The position numbers and the translations under genes were made by a program. 64,000 bases of DNA. Origin: Tubulanus polymorphus (Eukaryota > Animalia > Nemertea). The notes under the pieces are model-generated. The model made no database searches, was not told the DNA's origin, and saw nothing but the letters and a program-made list of their open reading frames with translations. The DNA is taken from contig NC_134032.1 of NCBI RefSeq assembly GCF_964204645.1, positions 124,001 through 188,000 of the forward strand, given 5' to 3'. Below are positions 539 through 53,603 of this stretch, piece by piece. Every line of letters starts with the position of its first letter. Positions within the stretch are counted from its first letter, which is position 1.

Positions 539-676
539 TAAACGTTACTATGGCGGCGAGTAATCCAGGAATAAATGCAGACAATTCTAATTTAAGTATA
601 ATCGGTGACAATAATACAGTGAATCAAAATATCCACGCAGTTACTCAAGCCAGCACCAGACCTGCTGAGAATCTCG
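539..676 (+). CDS. Small exon encoding RHIM-like peptide 1 (MAASNPGINADNSNLSIIGDNNTVNQNIHAVTQASTRPAENL)
   Basis: Acceptor ttctgtttttcag|ta at 538/539, ATG at 550 in strong context (actATGGCG), open frame to donor G|gtaatt at 676/677; N/I/Q-rich core SIIGDNNTVNQ. Confidence 0.65.
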
Positions 677-3600
677 GTAATTATAGATTTTAACCATCAG
701 AGTTCAGTTCAGTACAGAATGATGTGACTTGAGTCTAAATGTGATCTCGTATATAAATCCGGTGTAAAGTTTTGAGGCGAAAGTAATATATTGTCTTTAA
801 AGATTCTGAGTACCAAAATGGACCCACCAACCCGATTGGTTTAAATCTTTGACTAATACTGTCAGGGTCTGGTTCTATAATCGGTATTTTGAATTATGGT
901 CTCTTATCACATCTGGTGACACAGTTTGTTTATCAGTCTCGAGTAGGAATAAAAACAGATTAACAGTATAAATACTGTTAACAGTAAAATAAGACCGCCG
1001 GGTGAAAGTTACCGTGATCAGATACTATCACGTTTCAATCCTAACCCTATAATTCAAAATGGGCCTGGGCCCAATTTGGCCCGACCAAAAACGTCGGACC
1101 AGGTGCGGGTCAACTGGTTCCGGTAGTGACTCACTTCGCTTTGTTTAGTATCAAGTGAGAGGTTTGCGTGTGAAGGCCAGTTTGTGGTGCTTTGGTACAG
1201 AGTAATGTAAATAAAGTGAATGTAAATGAATCAATGGTTCAAATGGGTGGCAATAATACGATGAATTTTTACCTTGGAGATACACAAACTATCGACAGAC
1301 CTGCTGAGAATCTCGGTAATTATAGATTTCTACCATCAGAACTCGTGCTTGAGTCCAAATGTGATCCTAAATCATAAGACGGGTCCGAAGTCTTTGACCA
1401 TGTCTCTAAAGATCGTTCTAAATCTTTAACTAAAATGATAGAAAATTATTTCAAGACATTCTATCCACCAGGTGGCGTATGATTGTTTAAGCCCAGTTGG
1501 GACTTTAGTCCCAGTTGGCTGTTGATTTCACTTTTTGCCCGTTCGTCCGTAGATGGAATCCAGTTATTTCGGATTGTCCCTGTTCACGATCAAGATGGCT
1601 GACAGGCAGCCAGTTCATACATATTTATTGCTATTGGAAGAACTTGTGACTGACACCTACTCAAAATCTAGTAAACTTACGATCAGTTTTTATAGCCACA
1701 TTTCAGGCATGAATTCCTCGATTGTTAAACATTAAAAATTATATCTCAGCAACAAATTTAGTTTATGGACGACAAAATAAAATTGATAATATTACTGTAA
1801 TTAATCAAATATTATTAAATGAAACATATTTAATTACTGAACTAATAGATACTTTCCATAATGGCTCCAGAAATCCTAAAATATTCAATACAGTTTTAGA
1901 TTATAAAGGTAATTTAGATGAAAAAATAATGAATATTCTTGAAACTCCTTTTAAAGAAAGAAATGATGATTTAATACTTTCTAAAGGTTACAATGATTTG
2001 ATTAACTTGAGAATTGAAAAACGAAAATAACATAATTTCAATCTTAATAATAAACAGATTACTTATAATGAAAATTCATCAAATATTGGAATTGGAATGA
2101 CTTTAATCAATATCCTTTATCTTTTATAAGTATATATATCTCCACAGCGCACATCAGCATAAGAAAAAGTTAAAATTTGGTCGATCGGACTCAATATGGC
2201 CGTCCTGAGACCTTTTTGTACCTATTTTTGGTCTAAATTCCGAGACCTGTAGCTTCCTAATTGTTTGGTATTTTCTGTTGAAATTTGTGATGGGTATTTT
2301 TTTGGAAAGGGGATTTCCTGACACATCAGACAGGTTTTTTTCATCATTCAATTTTAACGTAATTTCTTGCACACAGATGAAAAGAGGTGTTTTTGGGGAA
2401 AATGTCATTTTCACATAGTGGGTTAGTGATTTTAACTTAGTCTTGATATTTGGTCGTTATCAGCATTGTCATAGGACATGGAATTTCGGTCTTTTGTTCA
2501 ACCCACCAGGAGAATTAAATATTGAATTGAATACAATTTTCCATTTATATTGGTAACTCTGCATATTTTGTAAACGCGATCAATGAATTGATTTAAAAGT
2601 TGATTTGCTTAGATCAACTCGTTGATATCAGGACCTATAAGTTTTTTTCAGTGAGCGCTCAAATAAAAGCTGTTTTCGAACAAGCTGTAACAAATATTTT
2701 CTTTTAGCTAATTTTTCTCAATCGACCGGAAATTTGGAGACCAAATCAGCGACCATAGAAATTTTAACGACGCCAGTCGCAGCAAGTCGCACATGTTCTA
2801 CTTACTGCGACGCGATCGTCGCAATAGACCTACGGCTACGCGCTCTAGTGACTGGGAGATGCGCGATTTGATCCAGTAATACTGGGATTCGAACCCACAA
2901 TAGTTGTGAGATGTGTTTTGAAATAATTTTTTTTGAAGGATTCGTAGAATTTCTTATCATTTGTTTTCAAGCTGCTTTGACCAAAAAGACCAGTTATTTT
3001 AGCTCTAAGTCAATGACTATTACTAAATAGCTGTGTTGAAACCCAATTTTCCCTAATAGGCCAGAAATGCGACACTTTTTATCTTTGCGTGGTTTGGTTC
3101 CGATTTTAGTTACCACGTGACAATCGCAAGTACGATCGTTTCTTTATATCAGGAAATTTCACAATTTTACCGGCCCCTGCTTTATTGAAATCAAAGTTTT
3201 CAGTAACTATGGAAATAAGGGCACTTAGTCATTTGAAAAAAATGGCAAATAAAGATATATAGGTAGTTCTAGTAAAACAAGGACAGACTTCGGGGTTGGG
3301 GATCGGTAGTCCAGACCCTGCCTTCAAAATTGAACAATGAAAATGTAGATTAAGATTTGTAAGAATTATGAACTTTTGAATGAGATGAGCAAAAATTCAA
3401 GTTGAATTATCGGGAAGAGGATATGAATGTTTATAACTTCACCAGCGCGCATTGTTGCTTTAAATTTATGAATGAGTGATATCATAGAAAAGTTAATTAT
3501 CAGCTGAGTTCATCGATATTTTTACCTTATTTCTATTTTAATCCAATCCAGAGATATGAACGAAATAAGAAAATTAAACTGGGGAAAAAATTGGGACAAG

Positions 3601-6600
3601 AATTCAACAATGCGGACCCGGTGGGTACCCAAAAATAGCGCCTGGCAACTGTAAAAAGACTTATCGCGTCGCAACCGACTTACACCCGGCTTAAAATATC
3701 TCAAACTGATTTCATTTTTGTGGTCGGGTCGCGTAGCAACGCCGACCACGATGTTTTAGTGGTTCGACTTCATTTTCCCATTTTTTCTGTTATTTGACAC
3801 AAGATACGTAGCTTTGTAATTAGTTCAGGGAAATTTGTTGCACTTTCCTGGGTTTATTGAAAGAACGAATGAATTTATTTCTAAAAGAAGAAATCGAAGG
3901 AATTCTGTAAAATAATAATTATTTTCCCGCCTGATGTCATATCGGGATATCCCTTGACTTTTGCGCACCGATATGGCTGATCGGCCTTTCTAAAAAAAAG
4001 TAATTCATACTCGTTGAAGTGTGCCGCTACTTATTGTATTGTATATCCCAGGCCTAGAAACATTTTCTTGGTGAAATCTAAATTAACAAAGTATATTTGG
4101 TTTACCTGCGCTAAGACTTAAAACCGGCACTTCTTATGCGCGTAAGCAGCGAAGATTTGTGTTCAGAAAACCGGTTCATCGTGTATCACGTGACTAATAC
4201 AGTTTTCCAATCCTCATTTCAAAAGTTAAGAACTAAATGAAATGAATTGTTGTCATCCGATTTACTCAAACTGAAATTCACAGAAAGATGAGAAAGATTA
4301 ATAAACATCTTGTCCTGTGCTGAAAATTGCATGTTGATGCGCGGCGTAGTTTGCAGTATTTACTGCGGAGCTGTGATGATATCGCCCTCGTTTTAGTAAC
4401 ACGTGAAGCTCACCAAAATCAATGAAGCCGTTTATCTTTAGATTAAGTATAAATTTGTATAAAAAGGTGAAAAATCTGACTTTTTTAAAGGTGACTTTTG
4501 GAAATGTTTTCCTCGTGTAGATTGAAAATAAAGGATTTTTCCACTCGTGTAGATGGGACCTTGAATGTCTCTGATCGAACTTGTTGCTAACCCGACCCCA
4601 CAGAAAGATCCTTTCTGGTGCATATTTTGCCACCGCAATCAATTGCAAAGTTTTAGCTCATGACATGATGTATGATTGTGGTGAGTTTCAGGTTCGTTGG
4701 TTTTTGTTTAAGGTCACCAGGGGGCGTTGAATAGCAGAATAACTCAGTATTTCCTTGGTACCTAGGCATATTTTGTAACTGCGGTCAATTGTACAATTTT
4801 AGCTCATGACATTTTCTATGATTCTATGATTTTCAGGCAAAATCAGCCGCCATAGAAATTCTAAAAAAATCTCAAACTGATTTTATTTTTACAGATGTTG
4901 ATCAAGTTCGGAAGAACCTGAAAGAAACGTATAAACGAATGATCGATGTTGAAAATTACAAAGAGGTTTCGTGGAGCGATGAATTCGTCAATTTCAACGA
5001 CTTCTTCGCCCAAGAACACGCGAAAATTCAAGCCCAAAAACGAAACCCGAAGAAAAATGAAGGAAGTGAGGAGCAGTCATTGATTTTACCCGATGATTTC
5101 GGGAAACTTTTCACTTATAAAGAGAGTGATGTGAAACCCGTGTGCCTTGTAGGTGAACCCGGTATGGGTAAAACAACTCAGGTAGTTAATCAAGTGTTGT
5201 CATGGGAGCGATCACCGTTTCTAAAAAGATTTCCTATGTTATTCTATATACCGTTAAATGAACTGCCCGCTGATAACGCGTGTATTTATAAGTACATTTA
5301 CAAAAATCTTTTGAATCGAGTAATCGAAGAGAATCTGCTGATTAGTTTTGAGAGATTCTTACGGGAAAATGCAGAAAAATCGATATTTTTTCTAGACGGC
5401 TTCGACGAGTTAAAAAGCGATAAAGCGAAGAAAGACATCGTAGGCGTGACCAATGAATTACCGAAAGCGCATATCGTCATAACAACACGTGAGTCCGGGG
5501 GCAGCATGATCGTCACTGATCCCAAATTCACTGTTGTATCGATATCCGGCTTCAAACGGGAAGAAGTCATCGATATTATGAAGAGAAAATTCCCCGAGCG
5601 CGATGCAAAACAGCTATTCAACAAGCTTAGATACGCAGCGTCACCTTTATTTAAAAGTATCTACTACAACCCGCTGATACTACATATGTTTTGTTTTCTG
5701 TATATGGACGAGGAAGAAATTACGATACCATCAAAACTCACCGATATCTACATCGATTTGACATGTTTTCTGATCAGTAAACGCGAGGGCCTCGAGTTGT
5801 CGAAGGAATGTTTTTTCCGCAATATCGAAAATTCTAAAGCGCTTAAAGAAATTTGTCAAGTCGCGTATGAGACGCTCATCGAGCATCAAAACAGCTTCAC
5901 CGAAAGTCGTCTTGAACTCGACGAATCGAAAAGGACGGCTTTGACGTGCAAAGAGATGTCGCCGCGACGGAAATCAGACTGCTCCGTCCAGCTGCGGTTC
6001 ATACACAAATCTGTGCACGAATTTCTGGCGGCGGTACACTCGGTCGTACAATTCAACAACAGTAATGAAATACCCTGGAAAACACCCTGGAATAAATGCG
6101 CGTTTGAACAACTACAGGACGAACTTGTGAAATATGGTGAATTATACCCGAGATTCATGGCAGGGCTGCTGTATCGTTACAAGTTTAACCGCGGCCTCGG
6201 TGAACTTTTCAAGACTTTAATAGATGAACATTTAAAAGCAGTCACAATAATGGATGAGTACCAGTCCTTGGTTACGGTTACTAGGGAATCGGCAGATATG
6301 CCGCTCATCCCCGATTACGAACGCTACATCGAACTCCGATCCGAAAGAACTGTTTTATCTGATCAGTTGTCAATCTGCATGGATGAAGCCGACTGGCCGG
6401 ACGACGCCATTAGTGAAATAGTTCCCTACATGCAGAAAATGTTGTTCGTATCTGCATTTTATAGCAGATCGTGGATAAACATGCTCGCAAAAATACTCGA
6501 ACACAAACAATGTCAGATCGAGCTAGTTTACATACTGGGTATTCACGAACTGAAACCCGACGAATACCGCCGCGTATTAGAAACAGCCATAACGAGTAAC

Positions 6601-7737
6601 ACTAGTCTTCACGGTATGATATTAGATACACGCGGGTCATCAATACCCGATCAGTTCTTGACTATGTGTAAGAAAAGCTACAGTATAAACTGGTTTGTGT
6701 GGCGAGATAGAATCGACAACACTGGTGAATGTTACAAGAAACTCAATAATGAATGGATTATTACAAGTCACGAGATTAGATCTAAAGATGACGCGCGGTT
6801 GATCAGTGTTGATACTAACACACACAATACAGTGGAGAGTCTGATTATTAATACTGTTGTTAGTGCGGAACGTTTTGGTTATATTTTAGTCAATATTCAC
6901 AAATCGTATCCATCCATAAAACATCTATATCTCAGATCGTGGCCTCAATATCAGCTCGATAGAAATACAATCGGAGGGCTGATAAACATCATTCCGAGTT
7001 TGAAAACCTTATGTCTTGGTGGAGTAATATTCGATAATGATTTGATCGGTTCGGAGGAATTGAATGATTTAAACAACACGTTAAAATCGTCAGACATCGA
7101 AACAATTCAGCTCGGAGTGTACGGACTGCGCGAACTGCGCGAACAGCTCGGACTGCTCGGACTAACGACAGATGAATGTGCAGCAATCAGTGATAATGTC
7201 GGTTCAATGCAGAAACTAAAACGTCTTTTCATTTACGGATTTAATTTACAAAAACACCGCGTTCTAGATCACCTGCCGCGGCTGACTGTATTAGAAATAG
7301 AGTTGCAGTCAGAAGCTGATGTTGACGCACTTGTTCGGTATCTATCAACAGATGCGGTAAATCAGCTGATACAAGTCAGTATTGATAGCCGTCTCGATAG
7401 ACCGGAACAGAACAATCGCATCTTTAAACAACTAAAACACGTCTCATCAATTCGTTATTTAAAGTTTCACAGTTCACTCACGCGGATTAATACACAGCAC
7501 GATATCGATTTATTCGTCAAATTAATCGTCGAATTAATCGATAATCTTCCGCATCTTTCTGACCTGTTTATCTACTGCTGCAGCACCGACCACTATACGA
7601 CGAGAGATTACTTCATATCAGAACTTAAAAAACTCAATAAAAGACTGAGAGTAGAAATAGGGGTTTACTACCCAGCATCTGTATTATCAGATTCATCAGA
7701 TATATCATCGATATCGGAGCTCAGTGACGCAAATTAA
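550..7737 (+). CDS. NLR-family receptor: N-terminal RHIM-like motif(s) + NACHT + LRR-like C-terminus (predicted exons 550-676, optional ~1181-1315, 4895-7737)
   Basis: ORF 4939-7737 has Walker A GEPGMGKT, Walker B IFFLDGFDE, sensor-1 IVITTR, YNPLIL (GxP-equivalent), winged-helix motif FIHKSVHEFLAA and C-terminal LxxLxL repeats (IKHLYL, LKTLCL, LKRLFI, LTVLEI, IRYLKF, LSDLFI). The frame stays open upstream to a phase-1 acceptor (ttttattttt acag|at at 4894/4895) that matches phase-1 donors at 676 and 1315 (CTC G|gtaatt). The NACHT exon is high confidence; the join to the 5' exons is inferred. Confidence 0.85.
1181..1315 (+). CDS. Small exon encoding RHIM-like peptide 2 (...VQSNVNKVNVNESMVQMGGNNTMNFYLGDTQTIDRPAENL)
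   Basis: ORF 1192-1377; VQMGGNNTM fits the RHIM core; it has the same 3' end and donor (RPAENL G|gtaatt) as exon 539-676. The 5' boundary is uncertain (candidate acceptors at 1148, 1180, 1200). Confidence 0.6.
1722..2030 (+). mobile_element. Possible degenerate non-LTR retrotransposon 3' fragment in the NLR intron
   Basis: AT-rich 102-aa ORF; NLVYG...INQILL..YLI resembles the C-terminal tail of L1/Tx1-type ORF2, but no catalytic motif is present. Confidence 0.25.
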
Positions 7738-51281: not shown

Positions 51282-53603
51282 ATGTCTCAACGAGATGATA
51301 CATCATCGGCGGGAGGATTAACGATGCAGCAGCAGCAGCAGCACCAGCAGCAGCCGACCATCTGCCAAATAAACGACCGCCTGAAGCGGACTCAGATGAT
51401 CCGACCTCCGTGGCGCACGATGCTCCATGCCGAAACTCTACACTACGTTCAAACCCACGCGAACGCGATCGGCGTCGCCGAGGAGTACGTCTGCTTCCCG
51501 CTGCTGACGATCGTCGCCGGTCTCATCGGCGCCAAGGCGTCGCTCGAGGTTACCGATACGTGGCACGAACCGGCGGTGCTGTGGTGCGGTCTGCTCGCGC
51601 GACGCGGCGAACTCAAGTCGACCACGATACGATACTTCGCGCGATCGCTGCGCGCGTTCGAGGACGCACTCACGCGCGATGTATCGACGCCGCAGAGTTC
51701 GCAACACGTCCTACTCGACGAGGCTGAGTTTACGCCGCGCGATCTGGCGCGACGACTCGACGCCAACGGCAACTCGATGATCCTGTTGGCGGAGGACCTG
51801 ACGACGCTTTACGAAGACGCCGCGTCAAAAAGCGAACGACGCGCCGATGAACGTCAGCTCAACGCGGCGTACCGCGGCGCAGAAACACCCGCGTTGGGCG
51901 TCGTCGGTTTCGTGCATCCGAAACGCGCCGTCGAACTCGTCACCGGAGACGACCTCGACCCGGTCGCCGCGCGTCTGCTGCTCGTGCATCCGATCGAACG
52001 CGACTGCTTCATGGACGACGTCGCGCCGGCGCCGAAATACACGCCGCCGCTGCACCTCGTTTACAAGATCGTCGCCGACGCGCACAGGCGCCGTCTGCTG
52101 TTCCGTTTGAGCGCTGAGGCGCGCGACATCGCCTACGACTACCTCGACGAGTTAATCGCGTTGAAGAAAATGTCCGCCGGCGACGAGAACAAACGATACG
52201 TGCTCGCGAACGCGTGCGGTCAGTTTTGCCGCCTGGCGTTGGCCGTACACACGCTGAACGGCGCCGTCAAAGAGGCGCAATCGCGCCACGAAAACGCCGA
52301 GAACTTGGACGCCAGTTTGAGCGTCGTCGACAACCAGTGGCGCACCGGTATCGTCGGCGCCGACTCGGTTCGCCAGGCGCGCGATCTCATGAACTTTCTC
52401 ATCGAGCAGAAGTTCATATTGATGGGGTTCGAACCGGCGACGGCAGGCGCCGACGAACACCAGTTGAACGTAAACGAACACCGATTGAACGTCGACGAAC
52501 ACCACCCCGCGATGAACGTCAGTTTCGACATGAAAACCGGTCAGTGGTTGACGACCGCGGCCGGCGGCATCTTAATGCCGACAATGACTAAACCGATCGC
52601 GTACAATCAACAAGTGGCGCCACATATAGGCTACGCTGTTCATCCGCCGCCCGCTCATACGGCGTTCACGGCGACTAAAGCCGCGCTCGAAGCGCCGCTC
52701 AACGTTCAACGATCGCTCTTCAAAAACTACGCCGACAGTTTTCACATGTTGACGTATGCCGCAGCCCAGCAACAACAACAGAAAAAAGACCATCAACAAT
52801 TGGAACCGTTGAATTTGAACGTCAACTACGAACTGTTGAACGCGTCGCGCGAACGTACCCCACGGCAACGATCGCCGACGACGACCGACTCGCAGAGCTC
52901 GACGCATTCGCCGTTGACGACCGTATCCACGACGACGACCAAACACAACAATAGCCTGAAACCGGGTCGCGTCGTCGGGCGCGAGGAGAACGGCTGTTAC
53001 CAGTACGACTTCGGCAACCTGCTCCCGTACGGCGCCAAGAACATACGCAGCCTACTGACATCCGGGTACCTCGAGATCAGCGCGTCGCTAGTCGCCGGGC
53101 GCCACCTGATGCCGCCGACCCGAACCCCGGGCACGGAGAACCGCTATAAAACGGAGGCGGCCGTCGCGTATTTGCACAAAGTCGCGGAACTCGGTTTCGG
53201 TACGATACACCGTACAAATAAACGCAGTTATATATTCAAGAAACGGAATTACGAGGAATTGAGCGACGAATCACGTCGGATCCTTGCAGATATACAGGTG
53301 ACAGAGGCGGCGTATCGCAAGGTGAAACTATCGATCGTCGACGCAGACAAGAAGAACCCGCTCCTCGCTCAGATCGACCTCAGTAATAATAACACAAACA
53401 CGAGCAACGCTAACACCTCCGTACTGAATAGTTTAATCATGGCGAGTTCGACAGCGCCGATGACGGCGTTCGCGGTGGCGCCACCGCTCAGCGTTAACGG
53501 TTCAGCGACGAATAGCCCCGGATCGACGACTACCGCCGAGATTAAAGTAGAAAATACGACGGGTATCGCGGTGCCCCCTAGTCCAATGATAGTCGATCAT
53601 TAG
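51282..53603 (+). CDS. DUF3987 (YfjI-like) domain protein with degenerate P-loop motifs, Q/T-rich linkers and a separate C-terminal folded domain; single coding exon
   Basis: 773-aa GC-rich ORF; HANAIGVAEEYVCFPLLTIVAGLIG...WHEPAVLWCGLLARRGELKS, LGVVGFVHP, ARLLL and RLALAVH follow the DUF3987 motif order (recognised by eye); acceptor tatacag| at 51258; polyA signals ~54944-54955. Confidence 0.7.
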   Translation: MSQRDDTSSAGGLTMQQQQQHQQQPTICQINDRLKRTQMIRPPWRTMLHAETLHYVQTHANAIGVAEEYVCFPLLTIVAGLIGAKASLEVTDTWHEPAVLWCGLLARRGELKSTTIRYFARSLRAFEDALTRDVSTPQSSQHVLLDEAEFTPRDLARRLDANGNSMILLAEDLTTLYEDAASKSERRADERQLNAAYRGAETPALGVVGFVHPKRAVELVTGDDLDPVAARLLLVHPIERDCFMDDVAPAPKYTPPLHLVYKIVADAHRRRLLFRLSAEARDIAYDYLDELIALKKMSAGDENKRYVLANACGQFCRLALAVHTLNGAVKEAQSRHENAENLDASLSVVDNQWRTGIVGADSVRQARDLMNFLIEQKFILMGFEPATAGADEHQLNVNEHRLNVDEHHPAMNVSFDMKTGQWLTTAAGGILMPTMTKPIAYNQQVAPHIGYAVHPPPAHTAFTATKAALEAPLNVQRSLFKNYADSFHMLTYAAAQQQQQKKDHQQLEPLNLNVNYELLNASRERTPRQRSPTTTDSQSSTHSPLTTVSTTTTKHNNSLKPGRVVGREENGCYQYDFGNLLPYGAKNIRSLLTSGYLEISASLVAGRHLMPPTRTPGTENRYKTEAAVAYLHKVAELGFGTIHRTNKRSYIFKKRNYEELSDESRRILADIQVTEAAYRKVKLSIVDADKKNPLLAQIDLSNNNTNTSNANTSVLNSLIMASSTAPMTAFAVAPPLSVNGSATNSPGSTTTAEIKVENTTGIAVPPSPMIVDH

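Follow-up and report, generated by a model that had tools for sequence, protein, structure and literature searches.

LOC141909593 of Tubulanus polymorphus, a nemertean NOD-like receptor gene with short RHIM-like cassette exons in place of a death-fold domain

Introduction

Amyloid-type signalling is an established property of NOD-like receptors (NLRs) in fungi and a proposed one in bacteria. For animals, signalling by way of RHIM (RIP homotypic interaction motif) is documented in kinases and adaptors but not in NLRs; the sole earlier hint of an animal NLR of this kind is a sequence observation made in amphioxus in 2014. The gene described here is LOC141909593 of Tubulanus polymorphus (Nemertea), an NLR gene studied in a window, that is, the whole stretch of DNA analysed, of 64,000 nucleotides (G000:C8:124001-188000; genome size 268 Mb). 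Positions given without a prefix are those of the window; handles beginning with C, L and P denote contigs, loci and proteins. The architecture of the gene, an animal NLR in which short cassette exons replace the death-fold domain, is very probably real.

The nearest relatives in layout are proteins of Branchiostoma. A large set of RHIM proteins, with RHIM replacing CARD-like domains, was reported from this genus in purely bioinformatic work (Kajava, Klopffleisch, Chen and Hofmann 2014; PMC4262963), and B. floridae BF82280 has a RHIM-NACHT-repeat architecture like that of fungal NWD2 (PMC4262963). Like the T. polymorphus NLR, proteins of the BF82280 type are animal NACHT receptors with an N-terminal RHIM-type motif where a CARD-like six-helix domain is usual. 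They differ in that T. polymorphus is a nemertean (spiralian) and not a cephalochordate; its motif resides in duplicated phase-1 cassettes, modelled by RefSeq as alternatively included; and canonical, variant and core-less versions are present, together with a cassette on an NYN RNase gene (amphioxus is compared by its published description). Because the RHIM-NACHT layout was described in amphioxus in 2014, it is already known. Animal RHIM-NLRs go unmentioned in the later amyloid-signalling reviews consulted, and full-text searching returned no later report. The novelty that a first-pass annotation of the window had left to a literature search is thus narrower than the layout as a whole: what appears new is the spiralian example, the phase-symmetric cassettes, modelled as alternatively included, the ten-unit array of one paralogue and the NYN RNase cassette.

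Fungal NLR/effector amyloid pairs, NWD2/HET-S and PNT1/HELLP with its RHIM-like PP motif (PMC4344463, PMC7885112, PMC12881547), are like the T. polymorphus NLR in carrying a short motif at the N-terminus of the NACHT or NB-ARC protein; in the fungal pairs the motif recurs on a separate effector, for which T. polymorphus has candidates. Oligomerisation is proposed, in these pairs, to nucleate a templated fold in the effector. A T. polymorphus paralogue (P0013) has a unit of 21 residues whose period recalls that of the 21-residue HET-s repeats. Fungal pairs consist of adjacent genes with HeLo or HELL pore-forming effectors, whereas the candidate partners in T. polymorphus are unlinked, comprise an NYN RNase and RHIM open reading frames (ORFs), and are known from sequence alone. 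In bacteria, the BASS3 RHIM-like motif occurs on NLR/Bell gene pairs (preprint 10.1101/2020.01.06.895854). These are prokaryotic, adjacent or overlapping, and of NB-ARC-TPR type; the T. polymorphus protein is of NACHT-LRR (leucine-rich repeat) type. Vertebrate RIPK1, RIPK3, ZBP1 and TRIF (PF12721) have the core (I/V)Q(I/V/L)G-x-x-N, and a short strand comes before it. None of these proteins is an NLR, each being either a kinase or an adaptor; cassettes of T. polymorphus paralogues pass the same model, whereas those of LOC141909593 remain below the Pfam threshold. Solved NLRC4, NLRP and NAIP proteins share the NACHT, helical-domain and LRR body, and differ in having a CARD, PYD or BIR N-terminus where the T. 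polymorphus NLR has predicted disordered cassettes.

RHIM-derived NLR N-termini in a second animal lineage, and a distant one, would open amyloid templating by animal NLRs to direct testing, the peptides being short and the candidate partners defined. The locus is in addition a clean example of exon-cassette shuffling in an immune gene family.

Exon structure and isoforms

The gene comprises three cassette exons and one large exon, all on the forward strand. Exon A (539..676) has 46 codons, phase 1 in and out, an ATG in frame at 550 and a Gln-less variant core. By direct reading, its acceptor is tttttcag/TA at 539 and its donor CTC G/gtaat after 676. Exon B (1181..1315) has 45 codons, phase 1 in and out, and a near-canonical RHIM-like core; its acceptor, ggccag/TT at 1181, is weak and without a pyrimidine tract, and its donor is G/gtaat after 1315. 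The large exon (4895..7737), a single exon with the stop codon (7735-7737) included, encodes the NACHT, helical and LRR domains; its acceptor is ttttacag/AT at 4895 and its earliest in-frame ATG lies at 4939. Intron A-B occupies 677..1180. A repeat-rich intron (1316..4894, delimited by RefSeq junctions) precedes the large exon.

The region just upstream of the window, to which the first-pass annotation had extended its interest, contains exon 0, a further cassette located 330 bases before the window (G000:C8:123576-123671). It belongs to the same cassette family, is core-less, with an acidic stretch in place of the RHIM core, and holds the annotated start codon. The in-frame ATG marked earlier in exon A does exist; it is not the annotated start, since exon 0 precedes it. 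The coordinates and phases assigned at first pass to exon A, exon B and the NACHT-LRR exon are all borne out by direct reading. Phase 1 is kept at every junction, exon 0, A, B and the large exon being mutually compatible, and therefore splicing of any cassette, whether to another cassette or to the large exon, would leave the frame unchanged.

Four isoforms are modelled by RefSeq: X1 (P0025; exon 0, A, B and large exon), X2 (P0001; exon 0, A and large exon), X3 (P0026; exon 0, B and large exon) and X4 (P0024; exon 0 and large exon, with A and B both skipped and no core). All four in/out combinations of A and B are thus represented among these computed models. The three junctions predicted at first pass are all found in them, 676>4895 in X2, 1315>4895 in X3 and X1, and 676>1181 in X1. 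The spliced forms analysed below are RefSeq's own proteins; exons were also searched individually.

NLR body and predicted fold

The large exon matches NACHT (PF05729) at 55.4 bits against a cut-off of 26.7 (8.9e-15) over 5137..5595 (+). Motif reading places Walker A (GEPGMGKTT) at 5152-5178, Walker B (FFLDGFDE) at 5386-5409 and sensor-1 (TTR) at 5476-5496, all on the plus strand. A winged-helix motif, FIHKSVHEFLAA, lies at 5998..6033 (+), adjoined by a weak NLRC4_HD2 match; it presumably corresponds to the animal-NLR winged-helix motif FxHxSxQEFLAA, which it resembles. C-terminal strand/helix repeats forming an LRR-like horseshoe extend over 6295..7677 (+), as indicated by AlphaFold2 (AF2), Foldseek and weak Pfam LRR matches; all NLRC4_HD2 and LRR matches of the large exon are weak. 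Pfam finds no CARD, DD, PYD or TIR in this exon, in agreement with the first-pass annotation, and no death-fold or other folded effector domain in the cassettes, the RefSeq N-terminus or the intron ORFs; no Pfam family of any kind is matched by the intron ORFs.

Isoform X1 (P0025) was modelled with AF2 from an alignment of 13 paralogues. Residues 1-113 are predicted coil, with a predicted local distance difference test score (pLDDT) of about 23-25 and no Pfam domain. The NACHT region is of low confidence in the model, and residues about 580-1040 form alternating strand/helix repeats (pLDDT 65-93). A Foldseek search with this model returns NLRC4, NLRP2/3/7/9/14 and NAIP first, over about 960 columns and with E down to 1e-12; nearly all of the top 50 are NLRC4, NLRP or NAIP. 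Language-model searches yield no look-alikes of the N-terminus. As modelled, this NLR has no folded domain at its N-terminus, which is predicted to be disordered.

RHIM-likeness of the cassettes

The RHIM core consensus is (I/V)-Q-(I/V/L/C)-G followed by x-x-N (10.1101/2020.01.06.895854). The core of exon A reads S-I-I-G-D-N-N-T-V-N (595..624, +), with G-D-N-N-T kept and h-Q-h lost. The core of exon B reads V-Q-M-G-G-N-N-T-M (1237..1263, +), with Met at the third place of the tetrad and the rest kept. Across the cassettes, G, N and T of G-x-N-N-T are at least 90% conserved; Gln is not conserved.

Paralogous cassettes with the core MVQIGDNNTMNV score 22.6 and 21.0 bits with the Pfam RHIM model, above its gathering cut-off of 20 bits, and exon B is 68% identical to a paralogous cassette above that cut-off. 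A six-frame scan of the genome with the same model gives five matches over the cut-off, three of which are NLR cassettes; the 14 control genomes give none. The DNA pattern for V-Q-h-G-x-x-N-T-M occurs nine times in the 268-Mb genome and not at all in the reversed control. Seven of the nine copies are NLR cassettes, exon B among them, and the other two are non-NLR RHIM ORFs. Since the pattern was derived after these sequences had been seen and its seven cassettes are paralogues, the informative part is the two remaining bearers, which were found independently by the Pfam model. The extended-core motif is more than chance. Judged by sequence kinship, the cassettes are probably RHIM by descent, although those of LOC141909593 itself fail the direct Pfam test. 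The RHIM label given to the exons at first pass therefore stands through the paralogues' scores and not through the exons' own; likewise the RefSeq protein has the NACHT domain that was foretold and no RHIM match.

The cassette family in the genome

Exon A has more than 60 DNA relatives in the same genome. The cassettes are of three types: a Gln type with VQIG or VQMG (as in exon B), a variant type with SIIG, SISG, MRKSG or RIGG (as in exon A), and a core-less type (as in exon 0). Every copy examined has an open frame, phase 1 at both ends and splice sites kept. Cassettes are located 0.3-6 kb upstream of about 12 of the roughly 18 intact paralogous NACHT exons and of two pseudogenes, counts that rest on coordinates and not on inspection of every locus. 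A transposon origin was considered as the main explanation and rejected, because the copies cluster at NLR loci, with frame and phase preserved.

The first coding exon of paralogue P0013 consists of ten tandem 63-bp units with 93% matches (L011:5410-6162 = G000:C9:3605409-3606161). Every unit codes for 21 residues and has the core IVQIGD; the array leads into a last cassette.

A profile of the cassettes, run against 1.84 billion representative proteins, gives five matches, all from T. polymorphus, which does not by itself prove absence elsewhere. They comprise NLRs, a group of proteins made up of cassettes only (119-122 residues, encoded at three C8 loci) and P0020, described below. The cassette-only proteins P0018 and P0021-P0023 are encoded at L027, L028 and L029 (G000:C8:3.59, 2.39 and 3.81 Mb); the C-terminus of one such isoform is a stub encoded by the start of the NACHT exon. 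These proteins may be relics of truncated NLRs, or else small regulators of a RHIM-like kind.

Candidate partners

The search for paralogues and RHIM-bearing partners that the first-pass annotation had foreseen yields, besides the cassette-bearing paralogues, two non-NLR RHIM ORFs and an NYN RNase gene. The longer RHIM ORF has 434 codons and is located on contig C3 (L034:420-1721, minus strand = G000:C3:26755419-26756720). Its RHIM scores 21.7 bits, above the Pfam cut-off, and reads GVQLGNSNTMTV; about eight acidic 10-residue repeats follow. Homology searches and a sequence search of the PDB are blank for this ORF, and no database protein of comparable length is found. It is possibly TIR-like. 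The second ORF has 231 codons, lies at C8:4.55 Mb and ends in CVQLGNGNTMEV, at 19.4 bits. Both share VQLG-x-x-NTM.

The NYN gene encodes P0020 (XP_074658355.1), annotated as MARF1-like, with two variant-type (Gln-less) cassettes, an NYN domain (2.3e-17) and a MARF1-type RRM; its loci are L030:511-1994 and G000:C9:4829260-4848659. The same phase-1 G/gtaattataga donors are used by these cassettes, which sit upstream of the first NYN exon at a distance of about 1 kb. A paralogue on contig C4 (C4:9703477-9707003) is without cassettes. P0020 is the sole case of an NLR-type cassette on a non-NLR catalytic domain. Because a cassette on a catalytic domain is the arrangement expected in the fungal paradigm, this MARF1-like NYN RNase gene is a candidate effector by analogy.

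Proposed mechanism

In the proposed mechanism, ligand sensing by the LRR would lead to NACHT oligomerisation, and oligomerisation to clustering of the disordered RHIM-like tails. The clustered tails would nucleate or join a cross-beta (RHIM-type) assembly with proteins bearing the same motif. Alternative inclusion of cassettes would decide whether a given receptor molecule has a competent motif, X4 being motif-less and X3 carrying the best core. The two non-NLR RHIM ORFs (one possibly TIR-like) and the NYN RNase gene would be partners in the same genome.

That the gene encodes an NLR whose N-terminus, built of up to three RHIM-derived, phase-symmetric cassettes with A and B includable or skippable, signals through homotypic contacts is a reading held with evenly balanced confidence. 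RHIM-type homotypic or amyloid signalling by LOC141909593 as such is put slightly lower and is proposed tentatively. It is rather unlikely that the cassettes constitute a splice-programmable amyloid code, in which the choice of a canonical, variant or core-less cassette selects a RHIM-adaptor arm, an NYN RNase arm or the off state; if true, the system would parallel, in an animal, the fungal prion templating from NLR to effector, alternative splicing adding a further layer of control.

Several results weigh against signalling of this type. Exon A lacks Gln and the first hydrophobic residue of the core, and exon B has Met where RHIM has I, V, L or C. With the Pfam RHIM model (PF12721), neither exon nor P0025:1-113 gives a match, even with E allowed up to 10. 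The MVQMGD cassette, closely related to exon B, reaches 13.5 bits with this model, and exon B is one change further from it (to VQMGG). Against solved structures the cassette profile retrieves no RHIM chain at E up to 10; the only matches, to phage tail, flagellin and beta-roll adhesin head repeats, are insignificant. Public sequencing runs with the locus cover introns as evenly as exons, in the manner of DNA, and contain none of the expected joints over 5,900 bases; an RNA-like run of 2015 overlaps the locus by 43 bases only. Because the public runs at the locus behave like DNA, the isoforms are taken solely from RefSeq models. The family counts given above would be inflated if, as may be the case, some of the paralogues on small contigs are haplotigs. 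The candidate partners are unlinked to NLR genes, unlike fungal and bacterial pairs: the NYN gene lies at C9:4.83 Mb and the nearest NLR paralogues of that contig at 3.71 and 5.58 Mb; of the two RHIM ORFs, one is on C3 and the other at C8:4.55 Mb, with LOC141909593 at C8:0.12 Mb. The N-terminal 200 residues of the C3 ORF are TIR-adaptor-like by language-model features only (0.91); Pfam is negative for TIR, and a single-sequence AF2 model is poor (pLDDT 34). A complex prediction of two copies of exon B with the C3 RHIM segment scores 0.03, which is evidence neither way.

Alternative explanations

The main rival explanation is that the cassettes of LOC141909593 are degenerate RHIM derivatives that nucleate nothing, the N-terminus being a flexible Asn-rich tail. 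Signalling, if any, would then proceed by co-oligomerisation with paralogues that have canonical cassettes, or the protein would act as a regulator. The nil Pfam RHIM score of exon A, exon B and the whole N-terminus speaks for such decay, as do the deleted core of exon 0, the many core-less or Gln-less cassettes of the family, and isoform X4, which is without any core. It is less readily reconciled with exon B, where V-Q-h-G-x-x-N-T-M, so rare in the genome, is retained exactly, with the strong conservation of G-x-N-N-T across the cassettes, or with the open frames, phases and splice sites left intact in all copies examined. Decay is accordingly regarded as the less likely course, yet one of appreciable weight.

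Clearly less probable is that the cassettes interact in an ordinary soluble form, strung units making up for instance a beta-solenoid or beta-roll, or that they bind the NYN protein, with no templated amyloid. The ten tandem 21-residue units of P0013 could fold as a soluble solenoid, and the profile has its weak, non-significant similarity to beta-roll adhesin head repeats; a single 45-residue cassette, however, is too short to fold alone, AF2 gives coil of very low confidence, and the paralogue cassettes exceed the Pfam RHIM cut-off. Least probable of all, and very unlikely, is an annotation artefact, in which the cassettes are duplicated non-coding or exonised repeats and the NACHT exon is transcribed from its own promoter, with its start at ATG 4939. 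This would suit the computed nature of the isoforms, the DNA-like behaviour of the available runs, and the occurrence of orphan cassettes in a 2079-bp tandem repeat and near mobile elements. It is opposed by the 14 codons between acceptor 4895 and ATG 4939, whose protein sequence is kept in paralogues with identities as low as about 60%, and by the acceptor of the large exon, which is also conserved in paralogues (60-89% protein identity), as well as by the open frame and phase 1 at both ends of every cassette and by the position of cassettes upstream of most paralogous NACHT exons.

Additional observations

Within the window, the stretches 977-1173, 1371-2355, 3341-3734 and 4523-4916 have a contig depth tens to hundreds of times that of their surroundings in DNA-like runs; these deep intron stretches are high-copy repeats. 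An unbroken ORF of 773 codons at 51282-53603 (+) matches DUF3987 (1.8e-11); primase/helicase proteins from mobile elements and viruses typically have this domain, and the ORF may be an element inserted here. At G000:C1:19744861-19749150 (L007-L009, L025, L026), an orphan cassette of the variant type occurs in at least three repeats at a 2079-bp period, with no NACHT exon nearby.

The region around the shorter RHIM ORF (G000:C8:4545000-4561999, minus strand; L035, L036) consists of about 17 kb of long ORFs of 250-340 codons on one strand, none of which matches a Pfam family; a giant gene and an integrated element are the candidate natures. A 19-kb intron inside the NYN domain of P0020 holds Polinton/Maverick-like ORFs (polB, integrase, ATPase).

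In the models of two paralogues, P0007 and P0010 (G000:C6:22.26-22.31 Mb), a signal peptide, Ig-like ectodomain and transmembrane segment precede the same NACHT-LRR body in place of cassettes; if the models are right, they are membrane-anchored NLRs. Paralogue P0009 (G000:C19, about 30 kb) has a helical N-terminal domain of 300 residues (P0009:1-305) with no Pfam, NCBIfam or PDB relative, which may be an integrated effector domain.

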